Shown here piece after piece: positions 7,664 through 62,371 of a stretch of DNA of 64,000 nt. The stretch lies in the IMG/VR virus record IMGVR_UViG_3300023049_000005, positions 62,001 through 126,000 of that record. One strand, given 5' to 3'. The position numbers and the translations under genes were made by a program. Positions within the stretch are counted from its first letter, which is position 1. The number at the start of each line of letters is the position of its first letter. The notes beneath the pieces are model-generated. The model saw only the letters and a program-made list of their open reading frames with translations, had not been told where the DNA came from and made no database searches.

Positions 7664-9430
7664 ATGTCAGAATTATCAAATATATATGATCCAAATACGT
7701 TTATAAAAGAAGTTAGAGATAATCGTTATATACAGATCCAAGATGTGTATGGTGAGGTGGATTTTACTATTGATTACCTTTATTTTTCTTCTGCTATACC
7801 AAACGGTAGATTTTTAACAGTAATTAAAACAGATGAAACTTCTATAAAATTACAATTCACTTCAAGTTCAAAAACAATAACAGGGCTTAATAAACTATTA
7901 GACTTAATAGGAAAGCTCAAAAAGGGTACATATAATCCTACTCCTACGACATCTACAACCGAAACACAAGTTCTTGATTACTCTACTATGTACTCTAGTA
8001 GTAACTTCATAAAAGAGATAGCCCAAGTCAAGTATATCCAAATACAAGATAGATTAGCATCAGAAGTAGTACATTCTATTGATTTTAGTAATGTAACAAC
8101 TACTTTAACACAAGGCAGGTTTGTTTTTATATATCAGACTAATGTAGATCTGATAACATTACAGTTTATATCGAACTCAGAAGCAATCACAGCACATAAC
8201 ATATTAAGGGAAACAATAGATCAGCTAAAAGATGGCACTTATGATAAAGTAAGCTCAACTACTATACACGAACCCACACCATTAGACTACTCTACTATGT
8301 ATTCTAGTAGTAACTTCATAAAAGAAGTATTCCAAGATAGGTATATCCAAATACAAGATAGATTAGCATCAGAAGTAGTACATTCTATTGATTATAATAT
8401 TGTTACTAGTACTTTATTACAAGGTAGGTTTGTAATAGTACAACAAACGAATATGGATTCTATATCATTACAGTTTATATCAAATTCAGAAGCAATTGCT
8501 GCACAAAACTTATTAAGGGAAACAATAGATCAACTAAAGGATGATACATATAGTAAAACTATCAGTGGGGCTACAACCGATACCATATCATTAGACTACT
8601 CCTCTATGTATCATAGTAGTAACTTTATAAAAGAAGTATTCCAAAACCAATATATTCAAATACAAGATAGGTTAGCAGACCAAGTAGTACATTCTATCGA
8701 TTTTAATAATATAACAACCACTTTAACACAAGGTAGATTTGTGTTCATATATCAAACTAATGTAGATCTGATAACATTACAGTTTATATCTAATTCTGAA
8801 TCTATTACTGCTCATACTATATTAAGAGAAACAATAGATCAACTAAAGGACAATACGTATAATAAAACTTCTACTATAATTGGTGGTGTTTTATATGACC
8901 CTAATACTTTTATCAATCAAATAGAATTCGAAGACTATTCTGTACAGTTAAGTGATATAAAAGGTAACATAACAGATTCTATTGTAGCAAGACAAGTAAC
9001 TACTGTGTTTACTAGTGAGAATTTTGTTAAAGTTAAATTTGAAGCAAGTGATGAATTAAAGAGTTATCAATTTGAAACGAGTTCTAAAGCAATAGAAGGG
9101 GCTGAGAAACTTAGAATAGCTATTAAAACAATCACTGATAAATTATCATCAGAGGGTGATGGAAGTGGGGTACAAAGTTACAGCGAAGATTTCAATTCGA
9201 ATATATGGAAATTAGATCCTCCTGTAGATTTCTCTATGAGTTCTTTTAATTTAGATTATTATGAATTAGTATGTCCTGATGGATCTAATACTTGTGCCGA
9301 TGCAGATATTGTGAAACAAAGGTGTAGGGGCTTAGTAGAGATAATAGGGAACGAAGATACTGACGTATTATCTTATATTAATATTTACTTCAATCAAACA
9401 GTTAAAGGTAGAGCAATATTAATCGGATAA
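7664..9430 (+). CDS. late repeat-containing protein, possibly a virion protein
   Basis: about five 103-aa repeats; AATATATA motif 4 nt upstream. Confidence 0.7.
   Translation: MSELSNIYDPNTFIKEVRDNRYIQIQDVYGEVDFTIDYLYFSSAIPNGRFLTVIKTDETSIKLQFTSSSKTITGLNKLLDLIGKLKKGTYNPTPTTSTTETQVLDYSTMYSSSNFIKEIAQVKYIQIQDRLASEVVHSIDFSNVTTTLTQGRFVFIYQTNVDLITLQFISNSEAITAHNILRETIDQLKDGTYDKVSSTTIHEPTPLDYSTMYSSSNFIKEVFQDRYIQIQDRLASEVVHSIDYNIVTSTLLQGRFVIVQQTNMDSISLQFISNSEAIAAQNLLRETIDQLKDDTYSKTISGATTDTISLDYSSMYHSSNFIKEVFQNQYIQIQDRLADQVVHSIDFNNITTTLTQGRFVFIYQTNVDLITLQFISNSESITAHTILRETIDQLKDNTYNKTSTIIGGVLYDPNTFINQIEFEDYSVQLSDIKGNITDSIVARQVTTVFTSENFVKVKFEASDELKSYQFETSSKAIEGAEKLRIAIKTITDKLSSEGDGSGVQSYSEDFNSNIWKLDPPVDFSMSSFNLDYYELVCPDGSNTCADADIVKQRCRGLVEIIGNEDTDVLSYINIYFNQTVKGRAILIG
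7973..8899 (+). repeat. three tandem 309-bp intragenic repeats
   Basis: LDYS.MY.SSNFIKE units start at 7973, 8282 and 8591. Confidence 0.85.
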
Positions 9431-9754
9431 TAGTTCATCTATCAATGCATCCCTTTTAATCTTAACGGGTAAACTATTTACTTTTTTACAAAATCTATCA
9501 TATGTATCCATATCATAATACCCTGATTTATAATAGTTCATATCTCTTTTACTTAACCAACCATATTTATTTCTTATATCGTTGAATTCATCATGATGGA
9601 TAGAGTTAACAATAGTATATAAAAGCCTTAGCAAATCAATATGTTTATTGATCAATTCATCATTGGAAGTATTATATTTCTCGGCTTGTCTAATATAAGC
9701 CTTTATTGATCTTCTGTATTTATTCCAAAGTTTTCTTTTCTCTTGTCTGTTCAT
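9419..9754 (-). CDS. hypothetical protein, C-terminal motif family
   Basis: ends RDALIDELLSD; TATATTTG 5 nt upstream. Confidence 0.7.
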   Translation of the reverse strand: MNRQEKRKLWNKYRRSIKAYIRQAEKYNTSNDELINKHIDLLRLLYTIVNSIHHDEFNDIRNKYGWLSKRDMNYYKSGYYDMDTYDRFCKKVNSLPVKIKRDALIDELLSD

Positions 9755-9768
9755 AAAGACAAATATAA

Positions 9769-10503
9769 CTATTTTTTTGCTTTAATAATAGTATCGATAA
9801 ACGAATCTTTCATTTCCTCTCTTTTCTTTATGATCCTAAAGTCAAGGAATATATAAAACAGTAATAGTAATACTATCATAAAATAAGCAATTAAGTATGT
9901 TTTAAAATAAATATTCTGTGTTTGTATCTCCTCTTCTATTATAACAACTTGTTTATTGATATTGGATTCTATTTGGTTTAGTAATAAATCAATGTTTTCC
10001 ACAATAGTTATATTAACATACGGTGAACCTATAATATATTGATTAGTATATCCGTCATACTCTTTTAAGTGTAGTATATTAGTTAGGTGAATTTCCTTTC
10101 TTTTTAATAGATAATTAATGTTTTTAAGAATACTTCGATCTAAGCCCTTTGATATTTCAAAATCTTTTAGTAGGGATTTCCTGTACTTAGATACAACATA
10201 TCTATAATTTGAGACTAATAATCTTTTGTTATTATATAACCCACCATCTCCGTTAGTATCATTATATAATATAGTTTGTTCTTTGGTTAAAAATAAAATA
10301 GATCTACTTTTAATTTCACTCATTTCACTATTAAGCCTGATTATTTCTTTTTGTTGAGCCTCAATTTGATTAACACTTCTATCATATATCGTATTCAACA
10401 CTAAGGTTGACGTAGAAAATACTACTAATAATATAGCTATTTTAACACTTAAAAGGTTCTTTACCCTAAGGTAATTCCTTATCTTTTTTATCCATTTTAT
10501 CAT
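9769..10503 (-). CDS. two-TM membrane protein with a helical extracytoplasmic domain
   Basis: hydrophobic helices near both ends flanking a helical region. Confidence 0.6.
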   Translation of the reverse strand: MIKWIKKIRNYLRVKNLLSVKIAILLVVFSTSTLVLNTIYDRSVNQIEAQQKEIIRLNSEMSEIKSRSILFLTKEQTILYNDTNGDGGLYNNKRLLVSNYRYVVSKYRKSLLKDFEISKGLDRSILKNINYLLKRKEIHLTNILHLKEYDGYTNQYIIGSPYVNITIVENIDLLLNQIESNINKQVVIIEEEIQTQNIYFKTYLIAYFMIVLLLLFYIFLDFRIIKKREEMKDSFIDTIIKAKK

Positions 10504-10530
10504 ATATTATATATTAAATTTGAAAAAAAA

Positions 10531-10561
10531 TTTGGTAATTAAATAAACTTTATTATATTTG
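10531..10561 (+). promoter_or_regulatory. Bacteroidota housekeeping-sigma promoter for the tRNA operon
   Basis: TTTG (10531-34), 19-nt spacer, TATATTTG (10554-61); a late-type AATATATA also lies at 10587-94. Confidence 0.8.
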
Positions 10562-10599
10562 CACTCTATAAGGAAAAGAAAACTTTAATATATAAGAAA

Positions 10600-10656
10600 A
10601 TGGTATTAGTATTTAAACATAAATTTTTTCATAACCACTGCAAAAGTAGAGGGTGA
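10600..10656 (+). CDS. attenuator leader peptide 1 (His/Lys/Phe-rich) MVLVFKHKFFHNHCKSRG
   Basis: 18 codons with 3 His, 3 Lys, 3 Phe; 3' end carries AAGTAGAGG, complementary to the terminator 5' arm. Confidence 0.8.
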   Translation: MVLVFKHKFFHNHCKSRG

Positions 10657-10689
10657 GATTTTTATGTCTAAAAATTAAACCAAATGATT

Positions 10690-10723
10690 AAAACCTCTAC
10701 TTGAATAAAGTAGAGGTTTTTTT
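10690..10723 (+). terminator. attenuator terminator upstream of the tRNA-His pair
   Basis: AAAACCTCTACTT-GAATA-AAGTAGAGGTTTTTTT. Confidence 0.85.
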
Positions 10724-10730
10724 GTTATAT

Positions 10731-10803
10731 GGTGTTCGTAGCTCAGGGGAAGAGCGTCTGTTTGTGACACAGAAGGTCGGGATCTCGGAATTCCTCGAAC
10801 ACC
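10731..10803 (+). tRNA. tRNA-His(GTG) with atypical T-arm
   Basis: G-1:C73, stem TCTGT/ACAGA, GTG at 10764-66; T-loop CTCGGAA. Confidence 0.75.
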
Positions 10804-10813
10804 CAAAATATAT

Positions 10814-10906
10814 GGTGATTGTAGCTGAATGGTATGTAGTATCTGTAAGAGAACAAGCACTTGGTTGTGACCCAAGAGGATGTCGGTTCGAGTCCGATCT
10901 TTCACC
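10814..10906 (+). tRNA. tRNA-His(GTG) with ~20-nt D-loop insertion
   Basis: G-1:C73, stem CTTGG/CCAAG, GTG at 10867-69, canonical TTCGAGT T-loop. Confidence 0.75.
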
Positions 10907-10923
10907 CAAAATATAAATGAAAA

Positions 10924-11139
10924 ATGGAATATTGTTATATATGCTTTAATGGAACAGAAGAAGAAATGGTGTGTGATACATGTGAAGAACATTATTGCGA
11001 AGATTGTTCGTATATCTTTTCATTACACTACCAATTTCAAAGAAGTAGGTGCTATGAGTGTGCTGATCAGAGTAGAGAATATCCATTGGATAAAGCTGAA
11101 ATAAGAGAAAGAAAAATTAATATGTTATTAGAAGTATGA
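10924..11139 (+). CDS. small Cys-rich zinc-finger protein, C-terminal motif family
   Basis: four CxxC pairs; ends RERKINMLLEV; its stop overlaps the ATG of leader 2 (ATGA). Confidence 0.75.
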   Translation: MEYCYICFNGTEEEMVCDTCEEHYCEDCSYIFSLHYQFQRSRCYECADQSREYPLDKAEIRERKINMLLEV

Positions 11140-11213
11140 GAACAGTAAGTAAAAATATCAAAGGTTTTAAAAAGTTTTTTAAGAAGAACTTTATTAGGGA
11201 CAATACATCCTGA
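11136..11213 (+). CDS. attenuator leader peptide 2 (Lys/Phe-rich) MRTVSKNIKGFKKFFKKNFIRDNTS
   Basis: 25 codons with 6 Lys (3 AAA, 3 AAG) and 4 Phe; contains TATTAGGG, complementary to the terminator 5' arm. Confidence 0.8.
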   Translation: MRTVSKNIKGFKKFFKKNFIRDNTS

Positions 11214-11236
11214 TCGGAAATGATTAATAAATGTAT

Positions 11237-11270
11237 AAGCCCTAATAGAATATCTGTTAGGGCTTTTTTT
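11237..11270 (+). terminator. attenuator terminator upstream of the Lys/Phe tRNA array
   Basis: AAGCCCTAATAGA-ATA-TCTGTTAGGGCTTTTTTT. Confidence 0.85.
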
Positions 11271-11274
11271 ATAT

Positions 11275-11348
11275 CCCCTCTTAACTCAGTTGGCTAGAGT
11301 ACCGTGCTTTTAACACGGGAGTCGCAAGTTCGAGCCTTGTAGGGGGGA
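11275..11348 (+). tRNA. tRNA-Lys(TTT)
   Basis: cloverleaf; CCGTG-CTTTTAA-CACGG. Confidence 0.92.
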
Positions 11349-11356
11349 CAAAATAT

Positions 11357-11444
11357 GCAGGTGTATCCGTAGTTGGTCGAACGGTCCCGCCTTTTAAGCG
11401 GATGAGTGAAAGCTCCAACGTGGGTTCGAATCCCACCACCTGCA
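11357..11444 (+). tRNA. tRNA with Lys(TTT) anticodon and long class-II-type variable arm
   Basis: GCAGGTG/CACCTGC acceptor, CCGC-CTTTTAA-GCGG, extra arm GAGT-GAAA-GCTC, A73. Confidence 0.8.
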
Positions 11445-11449
11445 CAAAC

Positions 11450-11522
11450 GGTGATATAGCTCAGTTGGTAGAGCAGTGGATTGAAGATCCACGTGTCGGG
11501 GGTTCAAGTCCCTCTATCACCA
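11450..11522 (+). tRNA. tRNA-Phe(GAA)
   Basis: cloverleaf; GTGGA-TTGAAGA-TCCAC. Confidence 0.93.
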
Positions 11523-11530
11523 CAACATAT

Positions 11531-11604
11531 TCCCTCGTAGCTCAGTTGGTTAGAGCTACCGACTTTTAATCGGTAAGTCACAGGTTCGAGTCCTGTCGGG
11601 GGAA
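11531..11604 (+). tRNA. tRNA-Lys(TTT)
   Basis: cloverleaf; ACCGA-CTTTTAA-TCGGT. Confidence 0.93.
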
Positions 11605-11609
11605 CATAT

Positions 11610-11681
11610 GGAAACTTAGCTGAGACGGTTTAGCGGAAGGTTGAAGACCTTCAGAGGTGGGTTCGATCCCCACAGTTTCCA
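11610..11681 (+). tRNA. tRNA-Phe(GAA)
   Basis: cloverleaf; GAAGG-TTGAAGA-CCTTC. Confidence 0.9.
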
Positions 11682-11687
11682 CAATAT

Positions 11688-11761
11688 TCCTTCGTAGCTC
11701 AGTTGGCTAGAGTAACTGACTCTTAATCAGTGGGTCACAGGTTCGAGTCCTGTCGGGGGAA
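11688..11761 (+). tRNA. tRNA-Lys(CTT)
   Basis: cloverleaf; ACTGA-CTCTTAA-TCAGT. Confidence 0.93.
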
Positions 11762-11762
11762 C

Positions 11763-11799
11763 TAATCAGAGGTCGTGGGTTCGAATCCCACCGCCTGTA
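11763..11799 (+). pseudogene. 3' half of a tRNA gene
   Basis: TAATCAGA-GGTC-GTGGG-TTCGAAT-CCCAC-CGCCTGT with no 5' half. Confidence 0.7.
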
Positions 11800-11853
11800 T
11801 TTATATTAAAGGTTGAAATAAAAGATTATAACGTAGATGAAAATTAAATAAGA

Positions 11854-12978
11854 TCAAATAATTATTATACCGTCTCTATTAGGCGAAACGCTTAAGATTT
11901 TTATTCTCTGATGGAGATTATCTTGTATATAATTAATATATTGTCTAAAGTTAGGATCTTCTAAATCTGCTTTAACCCATGATTTGAAATCATAATATTT
12001 ACCACCACAATAAATTTTAAGTGGGGTTATATTTTCTAGTACATCAGATTTAGTCATAATTAAATCAGTTACTCCATTTAATTCTATACTCTCTTTTAAT
12101 TCATCTAAGTTTAACCAACCACATCTTCTTGGTCTGCCTGTTGTAGCACCAAACTCCCCACCTGCCTTCTGTATTCTTTCGCCAAGTTGATTTTTTAATT
12201 CAGTTTTCATATCACCATTACCAACTCGTGTTAAATATGATTTAAACACACCATATACTTTACCAACACTCTGAGGTGGCATTGCCAACCCTACACATGC
12301 ACCTGAACTTACTGTATTTGATGAAGTAACATATGGATAAGATCCATGATCAATATCTAACATAGTACCTTGTGCGCCCTCTGCTAGTATTTCACCTTCT
12401 TGGTTTCTTAACCAATTAGACTTAACGATATTTAATGTTTTAAGAAATTCCATACCTACTCTAAAATGTTCGAACTCAAGGAATTCATCTTGGTCTTTAC
12501 CCATTAAATCAACAGGTTCTATATTTAGATCGTTTCCAATAAAATCCACAACTCTATAACCTTCTCGGTATATTTTATCTCGATAACAAGGTCCGATCCC
12601 CTTTGGGGTACTACCTATGGTTGACACATTCTCTTTATCTTCCATAAAATGGAAAGGAGTCACTACGTGTGCGTTTTCTGAAATGAAAATTCTCTCTCTT
12701 GCGTTGGGTATATGTTCTTCAACTTCTTTTATTTCTTGCATCAATTGAAATGGGTCGATAACCATACCATTACCCAAAAAATTCTTTGTGTGTTCATGTA
12801 CTATACCACTTGGTATTAAGTGTAAAACTATTTTTATTCCATTATGATATATCGTATGTCCTGCGTTTGCACCGCCCTGATATCTAGCAACAATATCATA
12901 TTTTTTAGACAACATATCTGTTATCTTTCCTTTTCCTTCGTCTCCAAATTGAAGCCCTACTAATACGTCCATAAACAA
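11854..12978 (-). CDS. purA: adenylosuccinate synthetase
   Basis: GLQFGDEGKGK, GGANAGHT, EGAQG, GATTGRPRRCGW. Confidence 0.97.
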   Translation of the reverse strand: MFMDVLVGLQFGDEGKGKITDMLSKKYDIVARYQGGANAGHTIYHNGIKIVLHLIPSGIVHEHTKNFLGNGMVIDPFQLMQEIKEVEEHIPNARERIFISENAHVVTPFHFMEDKENVSTIGSTPKGIGPCYRDKIYREGYRVVDFIGNDLNIEPVDLMGKDQDEFLEFEHFRVGMEFLKTLNIVKSNWLRNQEGEILAEGAQGTMLDIDHGSYPYVTSSNTVSSGACVGLAMPPQSVGKVYGVFKSYLTRVGNGDMKTELKNQLGERIQKAGGEFGATTGRPRRCGWLNLDELKESIELNGVTDLIMTKSDVLENITPLKIYCGGKYYDFKSWVKADLEDPNFRQYINYIQDNLHQRIKILSVSPNRDGIIII

Positions 12979-13051
12979 TGATTATTTTATTATTCTATTA
13001 CTTTAGGGCATATATGTTTAAATAAAACTCTCTTATTTTAATATATAATAT

Positions 13052-43533: not shown

Positions 43534-43540
43534 AATGGAG

Positions 43541-43913
43541 TGGAGATGGAGGGAGTCGAACCCTCGTCACAGACACTTTAGTATAATACTTTCTACAAGT
43601 TTAGTTTACATAGTTAGGGTAAACACCTTAGTTAAACTTATTTTTTTAAACTGTTCTAATCAAACCAAAATTCAGTCCTTCTTATAATAACTGCTAAGAA
43701 GTTTGCAGCTTGGAGTTTTGTCGGTTGCTTAGACAGCTAATACAAGTTCTCCGTCTTGTACAGATTCCGTAGAATCTAATGCGTCTAAAACGTCAATCTT
43801 TTCAGATACTACGTTTAATTGTTTATCTACTAATTTATTAATCGGACACTTTAATAGACAATCCGATACTTGCTTACACTATCTGAAAATGACGCTCTAA
43901 TCCAGTCACCCCC
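43541..43913 (-). ncRNA. ssrA: tmRNA
   Basis: 5' GGGGGTGACTGGATT; 3' GACGAGGGTTCGACTCCCTCCATCTCCA; G3.U70 pair; internal tag frame 43812-43729. Confidence 0.9.
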
Positions 43914-61990: not shown

Positions 61991-62371
61991 CTATATCAAG
62001 TTATTTATTATTTGATCTCTTTTTATAATCTTCTCTATATCTATTGTAGTATAGAATCCATATCGAGCATTCGATTTATATTTTTGGTAAAAGTCAATAC
62101 TCCACAGTTCACCTAATTCTGAATAAGAATTAAATATACTATATCTATTTATACCACTTAAGGCTGTTTTATCTGACCCTGTGGTTATCTTATAAACACC
62201 ACCTTTAGTTTCTCTTTCTCCAAAATCACCATAATAATACACACCATTATCAACTTCAATAGTAAATTCTAATTTATAATCTCGTGCTAAAGCACTTTTC
62301 GTTATATACTTATCTATATTATTGAAAATGGTAATAATATCCTCTGTTAGTGGTTTTCGTTTAATCTTCAT
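61991..62371 (-). CDS. hypothetical protein, paralog of 62749..63174, C-terminal motif family
   Basis: YGDFG, GINRY, YQKYK shared; ends RDQIINNLI. Confidence 0.7.
   Translation of the reverse strand: MKIKRKPLTEDIITIFNNIDKYITKSALARDYKLEFTIEVDNGVYYYGDFGERETKGGVYKITTGSDKTALSGINRYSIFNSYSELGELWSIDFYQKYKSNARYGFYTTIDIEKIIKRDQIINNLI

Follow-up and report, generated by a model that had tools for sequence, protein, structure and literature searches.

In the attenuators of the trp, his, phe, leu, thr and ilv operons, a short leader open reading frame (ORF) with control codons precedes an intrinsic terminator located before the first structural gene. In the trp/his type, a ribosome that has reached the ORF's end masks the antiterminator strand, and a stalled ribosome leads to read-through. 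By a related logic, genes of the charging machinery are expressed according to how much of the cognate charged tRNA is available: the pheST genes of E. coli are controlled by an attenuator with the leader pheM, and synthetase genes of Firmicutes are controlled by T-boxes. Two serial short ORFs within one leader, each expected to control the choice between stem-loops, are described for the tandem attenuators of Salmonella mgtCBR (PMC3641672).

It is common to view the tRNA genes of phages as constitutive codon-usage or anti-defence cargo. The tRNAs and aminoacyl-tRNA synthetases of huge phages were catalogued by Al-Shayeb et al. (2020; PMC7162821), who predicted Bacteroidetes hosts for genomes above 634 kb; the words attenuat-, leader and terminator are absent from the main text of that study, which does not describe the regulatory layer. 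In the phage presented here, a tRNA operon is probably controlled by two serial ribosome-mediated transcription attenuators, which represent a family present in Bacteroidota-type huge phages, a reading inferred from sequence alone. No earlier account of attenuator-controlled phage tRNA genes was found in the literature searched, in agreement with an initial annotation of the locus, whose author knew of no such description.

The operon is located in a stretch of 64,000 nt, hereafter the window (positions 62,001 to 126,000 of the IMG/VR virus record IMGVR_UViG_3300023049_000005), from a phage genome with 29% GC. A recoded genetic code was considered and rejected: table 11 gives long, dense ORFs. 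Between positions 10531 and 11799 a promoter, a first leader, a terminator, two tRNA-like genes with His anticodon, a gene for a Zn-finger-like protein, a second leader, a second terminator and a tRNA cassette follow each other. The promoter-like site (10531..10561, + strand) consists of TTTG (10531-10534), 19 nt and TATATTTG (10554-10561), an arrangement that fits the -33/-7 promoter consensus of Bacteroidota. The assignment is inferred and rests on this consensus match only; a like arrangement lies upstream of units in the related loci L012, L017, L126 and L128. Directly 5' of the ATG of the first leader, the 5'UTR contains the conserved motif AAAACTTTAATATATA (10579..10594, + strand). It has a single exact match in the window and was elsewhere limited, among the loci examined, to the UTRs that precede leaders in L012 and L017. 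The motif TTTAATATATAAGAA is also present 5' of leaders in the huge phage LR745206.1.

The first gate begins with leader ORF 1 (10600..10656, + strand; ATG at 10600, TGA at 10656), whose 18 codons encode MVLVFKHKFFHNHCKSRG followed by the stop. Its control codons, F5 to H13 (FKHKFFHNH), comprise three His, two Lys and three Phe codons. Nine of 17 codons belong to the set of the downstream tRNAs, an enrichment with P 4e-4 against the phage's own protein composition. The antiterminator strand AAGTAGAGG (10644..10652, + strand) ends 1 nt before the stop codon. It is a copy of the 3' arm of terminator 1 and a 9-nt complement of the 5' arm (10644-10652:10694-10702; shuffle P ~0.001). Intrinsic terminator 1 (10690..10727, + strand; -16.0 kcal/mol) has a 13-bp stem at 10690-10720 and a T-tract to 10727, and stops 3 nt short of the first tRNA-like gene. 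The leader 1 RNA folds far more stably than its shuffles (z -5.95). In folds with a ribosome placed on codons 1-12 of the leader, antiterminator 1 forms; with the ribosome on codons 13-18 it is absent. Conservation of this gate is shown by the ortholog in L012, where 5'UTR, leader 1 and terminator 1 are identical at 157 of 158 positions and the leader ORF is 100% identical, whereas the purA DNA is only 77% and the Zn-finger gene 89% identical.

The second gate is built alike. Leader ORF 2 (11136..11213, + strand) has 25 codons and encodes MRTVSKNIKGFKKFFKKNFIRDNTS followed by the stop, with six Lys and four Phe codons (KGFKKFFKKNF); its ATG overlaps the TGA of the Zn-finger gene as ATGA. In-set codons account for 10 of 24 (enrichment P 8e-4 against the phage's own protein composition). 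The antiterminator strand TATTAGGG (11192..11199, + strand), which ends 11 nt before the stop codon, pairs with CCCTAATA in the 5' arm of terminator 2 as an 8-nt complement (11192-11199:11240-11247; shuffle P 0.005-0.0075), and this pairing is present in the predicted fold of the nascent RNA. Terminator 2 (11237..11272, + strand; -18.3 kcal/mol) has a 13-bp stem at 11237-11265 and a T-tract to 11272, and ends 2 nt before the first tRNA-Lys gene; the RNA of leader 2 again folds more stably than its shuffles (z -3.78). L012 retains the leader 2 ORF (MINVNKNIKGFKKFFKKNFIRENTS); there its start overlaps the upstream stop in another way, and one Lys codon differs synonymously. For both gates, the anatomy and the alternative pairings are shown. 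An assignment of the terminators to upstream genes was rejected on two grounds: gate 1 sits in a divergent intergenic region, and the gaps of 2-3 nt between terminators and tRNA genes are too small for any promoter.

The genes behind gate 1 are unusual. The tRNA-His-like gene 1 (10731..10803, + strand) has a GUG anticodon, G-1:C73 and an aberrant T arm, and scores 44.9 bits with the Rfam tRNA model (gathering score 29). The tRNA-His-like gene 2 (10814..10906, + strand; 51.6 bits) shares anticodon and G-1:C73 and has a 21-nt insertion in the D-loop and two mismatches in the acceptor stem; its copy in L012 keeps the anticodon, and a G:C pair of the anticodon stem has become A:U there by compensatory change. 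Neither gene was called as a tRNA by ARAGORN, and it cannot be excluded that they are not ordinary tRNAs. The following gene (10924..11139, + strand) encodes a Zn-finger-like protein of 71 aa with four CxxC pairs and without a match in Pfam. Its homologues in L003 and L004 lie in other contexts, at loci without this cassette, and the tRNA blocks at further homologues (L009-L011, L041) are ungated; the gene is considered a mobile passenger within the operon and no component of the switch.

The cassette behind gate 2 consists of six tRNA genes, all on the + strand and all called by ARAGORN: tRNA-Lys-UUU (11275-11349), an 89-nt tRNA-Lys-UUU with a long variable arm (11357-11445), tRNA-Phe-GAA (11450-11523), tRNA-Lys-UUU (11531-11605), tRNA-Phe-GAA (11610-11682) and tRNA-Lys-CUU (11688-11762). 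These six (11275..11762) score 52-73 bits in Rfam, and all eight tRNA matches of the operon (44.9-73.3 bits) exceed the gathering score of the model. A tRNA 3' fragment, read from the sequence as T arm and acceptor strand (11763..11799, + strand), closes the cassette. In L012 a LysRS-like gene is found in the place of this fragment; as it begins only 17 nt past the Lys/Phe cassette, it is probably co-transcribed with it. The phage also encodes a tmRNA. The elements listed in the initial annotation were all located at their positions, with corrections to the tRNAs: the four tRNA-Lys and two tRNA-Phe held, one Lys gene having a long variable arm, and the two tRNA-His held in part, with GUG anticodon and Rfam score on one side and the non-canonical structure and missing ARAGORN call on the other.

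Taken by themselves, the two units of the window are of modest significance (P ~1e-3 each), since codons for Lys and Phe abound in a genome of 29% GC. Their control codons are few and interspersed, with three His among the 18 codons of leader 1. Of the 21 strong terminators in the window, the two are set apart by a stretch some 42-44 nt upstream that is complementary to the 5' arm (9 nt, shuffle P 0.001; 8 nt, P 0.0075); one other terminator of the window reached P 0.0085. The weight of the evidence comes from related phages. Relatives were reached through purA homologues, then AspRS and GlnRS homologues and then their contigs, and by tblastn against deposited phages. Six related phage contigs yielded thirteen further leader-terminator-tRNA units; among these contigs are the published huge phages LR745206.1 (634,780 bp) and LR756502.1 (642,428 bp), which we take to be of the same kind as the largest genomes of Al-Shayeb et al. 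(2020) from their size class. These two genomes together account for six of the units. DNA searches for the locus itself returned little: megablast of 9400-13000 against deposited phages gave no match, and distant blastn against the same set gave generic tRNA similarity only. Neighbouring proteins used as single queries against IMG/VR recovered nothing beyond the source contig and a 39 kb contig identical to it, degenerate DNA patterns for both leader peptides and for promoter and 5'UTR recovered only the locus itself in IMG/VR, and the 5'UTR pattern in metagenome contigs matched the locus and 19 chance sites.

In each of the 13 units the enriched leader codons are those of the downstream tRNAs. 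At L017 a leader with ..TQPQPWQPQPQ.. is followed by Gln, Pro, Pro, Gln, Trp and Trp tRNAs. At L124 a leader with ..DFGMGGDDM.. precedes three Asp, three Gly and two Met tRNAs and AspRS, and a YYEEE leader followed by a YEYYEEE leader precedes four Glu and two Tyr tRNAs, TyrRS and a GluRS-like gene. The QQQQQQ leader of L126 precedes three Gln tRNAs and GlnRS, and leaders of the QQQQQQ(Q) type have Gln tRNAs downstream. L128 has two gates rich in E/A/G/Y/D, followed by Ala, Glu, Tyr, Asp and Gly tRNAs and by AlaRS-like, AspRS and TyrRS genes. The leader EAGYAAEGRGYAYEEDYDY has an Ala/Glu/Tyr/Asp/Gly cassette downstream, and the leader MNLNMTMNLTLNVVNITL a cassette for Asn/Leu/Val/Ile/Thr/Met/Arg. 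Cognate synthetase genes are often found downstream of the cassettes. Taken together, the gated tRNA sets span 18 amino acids or more, and in many cassettes a tRNA of normal length is accompanied by one that has the same anticodon and a long variable arm. Gates in series are also present in L124, L128 and LR756502.1, where the upstream gate bears the codons of everything downstream.

The co-variation of leader codons and cassettes is shown by several tests. The Fisher combined P was 1e-34 over all 15 units and 3e-25 when only 10 non-redundant ones were counted; when leaders and cassettes were re-paired at random, the observed match was attained in 0 of 100,000 trials. In a rank test the set of the own cassette scored best for 10 of 15 leaders. 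All 13 other units likewise contain a short ORF with start and stop codons, and every unit has a canonical hairpin with T-tract. In seven of nine units, an exact copy of 6-9 nt of the terminator 3' arm ends 1-12 nt upstream of the leader stop; in four of six huge-phage units this distance is 17-26 nt. Folds with a masking ribosome gave the antiterminator with the ribosome on the control codons and lost it with the ribosome near the end of the ORF, and switching was clear in U1, U3, U4, U5, U7, U9, U10, U12, U13 and U14. The simulation is crude and remained ambiguous for U2, U6, U8, U11 and U15; no ribosome is needed in it for the antiterminator of U2 to form. Among the gates of the window, gate 1 is consistent with the stall model and gate 2 is ambiguous. 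As background, 73 tRNA blocks in 123 loci, including the distant purA loci that were all an alignment of phage-type purA proteins returned from IMG/VR, had a terminator directly 5' only in units of the family and in one exception, an apparent extra unit in L086 that was rejected as an ordinary gene-end terminator. Ungated tRNA blocks exist in the same phages (L132 at 39871; L041).

The initial annotation had claimed that the leader codons match the identities of the downstream tRNAs and that the 3' part of each leader can pair with the 5' arm of its terminator; the first claim held in the window and across the related units, the second in both units of the window. It had also proposed a scan of related phages and named missing codon/tRNA matching in homologous loci as a refutation; the scan gave the opposite, a strong match. 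Its view of the locus as trp/his-type ribosome-mediated attenuation is supported, with read-through by stalling remaining an inference, and so is its series of gates, in which FKHKFFH of leader 1 also carries Lys and Phe codons. Counter-defence or starvation response, the purpose it had suggested, fared less well: counter-defence is not specifically supported, and a general feedback between supply and demand fits at least as well, because at least 18 amino acids are covered and cognate synthetases are often included.

The mechanism we propose would run as follows. Transcription would start from the promoter near 10531-10561 and a ribosome would load on the short leader ORF; translation of the leaders is itself inferred, and no transcript, 3'-end or ribosome data are available, with no RNA run listed for this phage. 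With plentiful aminoacyl-tRNAs for the control codons (His, Lys and Phe at gate 1; Lys and Phe at gate 2), the ribosome would reach the end of the ORF and cover the antiterminator strand, the terminator hairpin would form, and RNA polymerase would halt 2-3 nt before the first tRNA; this conditional termination is likewise inferred. With a scarce aminoacyl-tRNA, the ribosome would stall upstream, the antiterminator would pair with the 5' arm of the terminator, and polymerase would enter the tRNA genes and, in relatives, the cognate synthetase gene too. Stalling, the read-through that depends on it and the nature of the trigger are equally inferences. More tRNA would then speed up leader translation and shut the gate, a negative feedback that would match supply to demand. 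Scarcity of Lys or Phe tRNA would open both gates, because gate 1 has the codons of everything downstream; scarcity of His tRNA would open the first only. Coupling of transcription and translation during infection is assumed for the presumed Bacteroidota host, and a cultured host is not known to us.

The reading that best survives beside supply feedback keeps the same attenuation mechanism and differs only in trigger and purpose. It remains conceivable that the attenuators were selected as an inducible counter-defence, in which anticodon nucleases cut tRNAs and stalls on the leaders release replacement tRNAs. PrrC and PARIS AriB are known to cleave tRNA-Lys. Tending in this direction are the dominance of tRNA-Lys in the cassette of the window (four copies), the long-variable-arm versions of the same anticodon, which are possibly nuclease-resistant, and the tmRNA carried by the phage. 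Against it, the amino acids gated are far more than the known nuclease targets, the co-regulation of cognate synthetases fits a feedback on charging and supply, and no defence or anti-defence gene is linked to the loci. A bolder version, which may be entertained as a possibility, regards the gates as sensors of damage to host translation: loss of particular host tRNAs, be it due to a defence nuclease or to phage-induced shut-off, would stall ribosomes on the matching leader and switch on a supply owned by the phage. If this were true, a virus would hold an inducible back-up translation system for each amino acid, composed of replacement tRNAs, many with long variable arms that might escape cleavage, and of phage synthetases.

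Direct sensing of tRNA as in T-boxes, in which the codon runs would pair with anticodons without a ribosome and the ORF would be incidental, is very unlikely. The codon runs complement the anticodons of the regulated tRNAs irrespective of translation, and AGGGUG in the region of leader 1 bears a faint resemblance to the T-box sequence. However, no match to a T-box model was obtained at E up to 1 (10400-11950), the control codons are in frame with the ATG in 15 of 15 units, and the ORF ends 1-26 nt past the antiterminator strand in most units. The overlap of the leader 2 ATG with the upstream stop takes two different forms in two phages, and T-box leaders, at about 200-300 nt, are far longer than the leaders found here.

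Very unlikely as well is ordinary leaky punctuation, in which the terminators would be leaky, or 3' ends of sRNAs or small-protein genes, the ORFs would be due to chance, and constitutive read-through would make the tRNAs. By estimate, AT-rich intergenic DNA should contain ORFs of about 18-25 codons by chance alone, codons for Lys and Phe are frequent at this GC content, and leaky terminators are reportedly common in phage genomes. These points are opposed by the co-variation in 15 units with its re-pairing result (0/100,000), by the matching antiterminator copy that each terminator has of its own, by the extreme conservation of leader 1, and by the near absence of terminators directly 5' of tRNA blocks elsewhere. 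Action of leader translation by another route, namely Rho-dependent termination, RNase processing or precursor stability, or an arrest peptide, could draw on the lack of a clean switch in the simple fold model for some units and on common N-terminal motifs of the leaders (MKNVN, MTT) that are perhaps relevant as peptide, but is highly improbable given GC-rich hairpin and T-tract terminators in every unit and matching antiterminator strands in most.

If ribosome-mediated attenuation applies, the mechanism is a known one and the novelty lies in its target, the supply of viral tRNAs and synthetases. The tRNA genes would sit behind sensors of translation speed at the very codons they serve, and viral tRNA supply would be a regulated feedback for each group of amino acids, often with the cognate synthetase. 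Leader-peptide attenuation would then also cover RNA products, viruses and leaders combining the codons of up to seven amino acids. By a simple rule, a peptide of 18-40 residues would predict the tRNAs in the cassette. It would also become testable, by way of what opens each gate during infection, why huge phages hold tRNAs by the dozen and as many as 15 synthetases. The units are modular and comprise about 130-200 nt, with potential as codon-specific reporters of tRNA availability.

Among known systems, the attenuators of amino-acid biosynthesis operons resemble the phage units in their parts and differ in what they control. The classical target, enzymes of amino-acid biosynthesis, is absent from the locus, where tRNAs and a Zn-finger protein lie downstream. 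No Rfam leader family was reached: His_leader (RF00514) scored 34.1 bits at 11155-11272 against a gathering score of 49, and the trpB motif (27.3 against 59) and PyrR (26.7 against 54) also remained below theirs. While the biosynthesis attenuators control enzymes, the phage units control tRNAs and in relatives also synthetases, and the phage leaders are viral and combine codons according to the content of the cassette. E. coli tRNA-Phe genes with an attenuator-like leader were considered and rejected, as pheV of K-12 has no leader. The link to charging seen in pheST and in T-boxes has its counterpart in the synthetase genes behind or beside the cognate gate in L012, L124, L126, L128 and the huge phages. 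In contrast, pheM controls a synthetase only, without tRNA genes, and T-boxes, to which uncharged tRNA binds directly, were not detected at the phage locus. The serial arrangement is closest to that of mgtCBR, which senses proline and other signals for a virulence/Mg2+ operon (PMC3641672). Unlike in mgtCBR, a separate set of tRNA genes follows each gate of the phage, and the codons of the downstream part are united in the upstream gate.

The 270,756-bp viral contig IMGVR_UViG_3300023049_000005 (alias Ga0136601_1000001), of which the window is one part, was found in lake-water metagenome DNA runs. The window has a GC content of about 29% and its ORFs are dense with the standard bacterial code. 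As to the host, the closest cellular homologues of purA were found in Bacteroidia/Bacteroidota (44-48% identity), and the promoters fit the Bacteroidota consensus. Bacteroidetes hosts were predicted for genomes above 634 kb (Al-Shayeb et al. 2020, PMC7162821); the deposited huge phages LR745206.1 and LR756502.1, related to the window phage, are within this size range, without having been matched by accession to the genomes of that study.

Between a leftward gene starting at 10503 and the leftward purA (11854-12978, - strand), all elements lie on the + strand. A promoter-like TTTG, 19 nt, TATATTTG (10531-10561), matching the Bacteroidota consensus, precedes an A-rich 5'UTR with the motif AAAACTTTAATATATA (10579-10594), leader ORF 1 (MVLVFKHKFFHNHCKSRG, 10600-10656) and terminator 1 (10690-10727), in which a 13-bp hairpin is followed by a T-tract. 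Next come two tRNA-like genes with GUG anticodon (10731-10803 and 10814-10906), a gene for a 71-aa protein containing four CxxC pairs (10924-11139), leader ORF 2 (MRTVSKNIKGFKKFFKKNFIRDNTS, 11136-11213), whose ATG overlaps the TGA of this zinc-finger gene as ATGA, and terminator 2 (11237-11272). Six tRNAs in the order Lys-UUU, Lys-UUU, Phe, Lys-UUU, Phe and Lys-CUU (11275-11762) lie behind terminator 2. The inventory of the initial annotation thus held in all its elements, with three corrections. Both His-anticodon genes are structurally odd and were missed by ARAGORN, the first having an aberrant T arm with an odd T loop, the second a 21-nt D-loop insertion and two acceptor mismatches; one tRNA-Lys (11357-11445) has 89 nt and a long variable arm; and the final element (11763-11799) is only a 3' tRNA fragment.

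Several neighbouring features deserve mention. The His-anticodon genes are kept in the related locus L012 (11370-11200, - strand), where GUG is retained and a G:C pair of the anticodon stem has changed to A:U in a compensatory manner; they appear to be under selection, perhaps not as ordinary tRNAs. The 71-aa protein has no Pfam match and is mobile among contexts: its gene lies inside the tRNA operon in the window and L012, after a DNA methyltransferase gene in L003/L004 (3001-3219), and in L009-L011 and L041 (3114-3332) close to tRNA or AspRS regions. PurA is a short adenylosuccinate synthetase (372-374 aa) from a clade of homologues 55-76% identical, several of them on large contigs with phage-like genes. 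A 588-aa ORF (7664-9430) consists of about five internal repeats of some 100 residues (..SSNFIKE..YIQIQDRLA..VVHSIDF..LQFISNSE..LRETIDQLKD..), for which all Pfam matches were sub-threshold. The window also encodes a tmRNA (43538-43913, - strand; Rfam 59.3 bits, gathering score 47; ARAGORN tag peptide ..GELVLAV), and SmpB is encoded on a relative's contig (L013, 211-672), which amounts to a second phage investment in handling stalled ribosomes.

Terminators 1 and 2 both end 2-3 nt 5' of a tRNA, and any transcript making these tRNAs must therefore cross a terminator. Of 21 strong terminators identified across the window, these two are set apart by a long exact complement of the 5' arm about 42-44 nt upstream, the putative antiterminator strands AAGTAGAGG (9 nt, shuffle P 0.001) and TATTAGGG (8 nt, shuffle P 0.0075); one more terminator reaches P 0.0085. 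Each strand occupies the extreme 3' end of its leader ORF, 1 nt (leader 1) or 11 nt (leader 2) before the stop. Both leader RNAs fold with far greater stability than shuffled sequences (z -5.95 for leader 1 and -3.78 for leader 2). The nascent RNA was folded with the ribosome footprint masked. In gate 1, the unit of leader 1 and terminator 1, the antiterminator strand is locked up in a long hairpin when no ribosome is present. A ribosome placed on codons 1-12, a stretch that covers FKHKFFH, allows the antiterminator to form, and placement on codons 13-18 prevents it. For gate 2, the antiterminator no longer forms after the ribosome has passed codon 16; a cruder counting was ambiguous for this gate. 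Codon enrichment of the window leaders alone is only moderate (P ~4e-4 and 8e-4), Lys and Phe codons being common at 29% GC.

No close relatives were found in IMG/VR or among deposited phages; relatives were reached via homologues of neighbouring proteins and the contigs encoding them. L012 (purA 76% identical) has the same cassette as the window. The 5'UTR, leader 1 and terminator 1 are identical in 157/158 positions, compared with 77% for purA DNA and 89% for the zinc-finger gene, and leader 2 is still in frame (MINVNKNIKGFKKFFKKNFIRENTS), its start overlapping the upstream gene in a different way. A LysRS-like gene begins 17 nt past the last tRNA-Lys of L012. This gene is truncated (395 aa, 9134-10337) and directly behind the Lys/Phe cassette, where the window holds only the tRNA fragment before purA (11763-11853), which suggests a deletion in the window phage. 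L017 (purA 63% identical) shares the promoter and UTR motif of the window; its leader MKNVNVNINTQPQPWQPQPQGNGMGV is followed by two tandem terminators and Gln, Pro, Pro, Gln, Trp and Trp tRNAs, and a GlnRS gene lies close by. In this tandem, the first terminator is able to pair through its 3' arm with the 5' arm of the second, so that one antiterminator could disarm both.

In L124, MKQEMTYINIDFTITDFGMGGDDMSLLRIGIS precedes Asp x3, Gly x3 and Met x2, then AspRS; a second cassette on the opposite strand runs from MKNVNTYYEEENRLLIGV through a terminator, MMNTFYEYYEEEFTQRLKLR and another terminator to Glu x4 and Tyr x2, with TyrRS and a GluRS-like gene at its end. L126 encodes, in this order, MTYFYDIFQQQQQQSERSDRLAVPVRVT, tRNA-Gln x3 and GlnRS. 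E, A, G, Y and D are abundant in both gates of L128, which flank an initiator-like tRNA-Met; behind gate two lie Ala-like, Glu, Tyr, Asp, Asp, Glu, Ala, Gly, Tyr, Gly and Gly tRNAs, then AlaRS-like, AspRS and TyrRS genes. Six more units, picked up by a script blind to codon content, are present in LR745206.1 (634,780 bp) and LR756502.1 (642,428 bp): MTTMNLNMTMNLTLNVVNITLCNIR.. ahead of 18 tRNAs (Asn, Arg, Leu, Val, Ile, Thr, Met), MKTINVNIAPVNPQPQDQDP.. ahead of Asp, Asp, Pro and Gln x3, MTTNSTHKNFSKSHKWFS.. ahead of Phe, His, Phe, Trp, Lys x4, Arg and Ser, MKTMNLNMNLNTLTVVNNTL.. ahead of Asn, Leu, Val, Ile and Thr, and a serial pair, MKNLILNIAIQVQRQVVVDQDQPD.. ahead of Pro and Asp, then MTTSFQQQQQQQINRTD ahead of Gln x4, with a GlnRS tblastn match just 3' of the latter cassette. 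Such units are widespread across a huge-phage clade.

Further observations concern these regions. A small hairpin followed by TTTAATATATA lies ahead of leaders in the huge phages and L128, and in L132 also some 20 nt in front of a tRNA block without a gate (copies at L131 12660-12700 and 31670-31703, L132 17340-17380 and 39825-39860, L128 2450-2480). Its role may be that of a phage-specific promoter or a processing signal and not just of 5'UTR. HNH-type endonuclease genes lie between tRNA genes of relatives (L009 5370-6045, - strand; L041 591-1277), and tRNA-like stretches in L124 (5749-5937) were read by ARAGORN only with large insertions. In four lake-water metagenome runs, extra contigs align to the promoter and 5'UTR (10523-10594) at 5-7 mismatches, the similarity ending at 10594, six bases 5' of the leader ATG; in two of these runs (X2, X3), local depth over this segment is 3-5x that of the flanks. 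On the basis of these contigs, further units with other leaders likely exist in the source lake community.

The check proposed in the initial annotation, whether leader codons co-vary with tRNA identity in related phages, was run and held across 15 units. With the amino-acid composition of long ORFs at the same locus as reference for each leader, in-set codon enrichment was significant in 14/15 units (Fisher combined P = 1e-34; 3e-25 for the 10 units left after dropping second gates and orthologues). The own cassette set scored best for 10/15 leaders; the others ranked it second or third, usually beaten by a set overlapping their own. Random re-pairing of leaders and cassettes reached the observed total in 0/100,000 trials. 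Homologous leaders have common N-termini (MKNVN.., MK.INVNI..), and their control codons vary in step with their own cassette. The terminator differs in every unit, and most units have their own matching antiterminator strand near the leader 3' end, which we interpret as co-variation at the whole-helix level. Among 73 tRNA blocks in 123 loci, a terminator directly before the block was found only in these units and in one case of an ordinary gene-end terminator. Ungated tRNA blocks are also present in these phages (L132 at 39871; L041).

Sequence anatomy, alternative pairings, conservation and co-variation are thus shown. Judged from sequence alone, ribosome-mediated attenuation at the leader gates is the likely mechanism controlling the tRNA cassettes; leader translation, stalling, conditional termination and the trigger remain inferred. 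In three respects the phage gates exceed the classical attenuators. Since the gated products are tRNAs and, in relatives, also cognate synthetases, the feedback would act directly on the supply of aminoacyl-tRNA and not on the synthesis of amino acids. A single leader may hold codons for as few as two or as many as seven amino acids, and these jointly spell out the content of the cassette. Where gates are in series, the upstream leader holds the union of the downstream codons: gate 1 of the window has His codons plus Lys and Phe, gate a of L128 has the E/A/G/Y/D set though tRNA-Met alone sits between the gates, and gate B of LR756502.1 has Gln codons upstream of the Gln-only gate C. This codon union supports the series logic of the initial annotation, whose attenuator interpretation is likewise supported by architecture and comparative genomics, without experimental support.

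As to the purpose, the broad sets and the synthetases fit a general feedback that matches supply to demand while the phage infects a host whose codon usage differs from its own. An inducible counter-defence, as originally proposed, remains possible without specific support; against it, at least 18 amino acids are represented in the gated sets, and synthetases come under the same control as the tRNAs. Amino-acid starvation as the sole trigger, the other earlier proposal, fits poorly, since additional tRNA does not relieve a lack of amino acids. A T-box was ruled out, having no match in an Rfam model search of the locus.

Many cassettes combine a normal 73-77-nt tRNA with an 82-95-nt version of the same anticodon and a long variable arm, a body plan that in bacteria is normally confined to Leu, Ser and Tyr tRNAs. 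These versions span Lys, Gln, Pro, Trp, Asp, Gly, Met, Glu and Asn (window 11357-11445; L017 9922-10107 and 10285-10550; L124 6022-6107, 6198-6287, 6427-6511 and 10869-10952; L126 5233-5316; L128 4010-4095 and 4488-4576; also in L131, L132 and L135). They might be nuclease-resistant spares or substrates for phage synthetases.

The leaders belong to no Rfam leader family, the best match being His_leader, whose 34.1 bits fall short of its gathering score of 49. Neither for phages nor for other systems was a description of tRNA genes under attenuator control found in the literature searched, which did not cover most subscription journals, and an older description is not excluded. The words attenuat-, leader and terminator are all absent from the main text of the huge-phage paper (PMC7162821), and no leader was found on checking E. 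coli pheV. The observation at 10531-11799 itself is established; that it represents a known mechanism with a new class of target is likely, pending any experimental support. The trp, his, phe and leu attenuators share the working principle of the phage gates, and the pheST leader works in like manner. In contrast to these classical attenuators, the products of the phage gates are tRNAs and, in relatives, the cognate synthetases.
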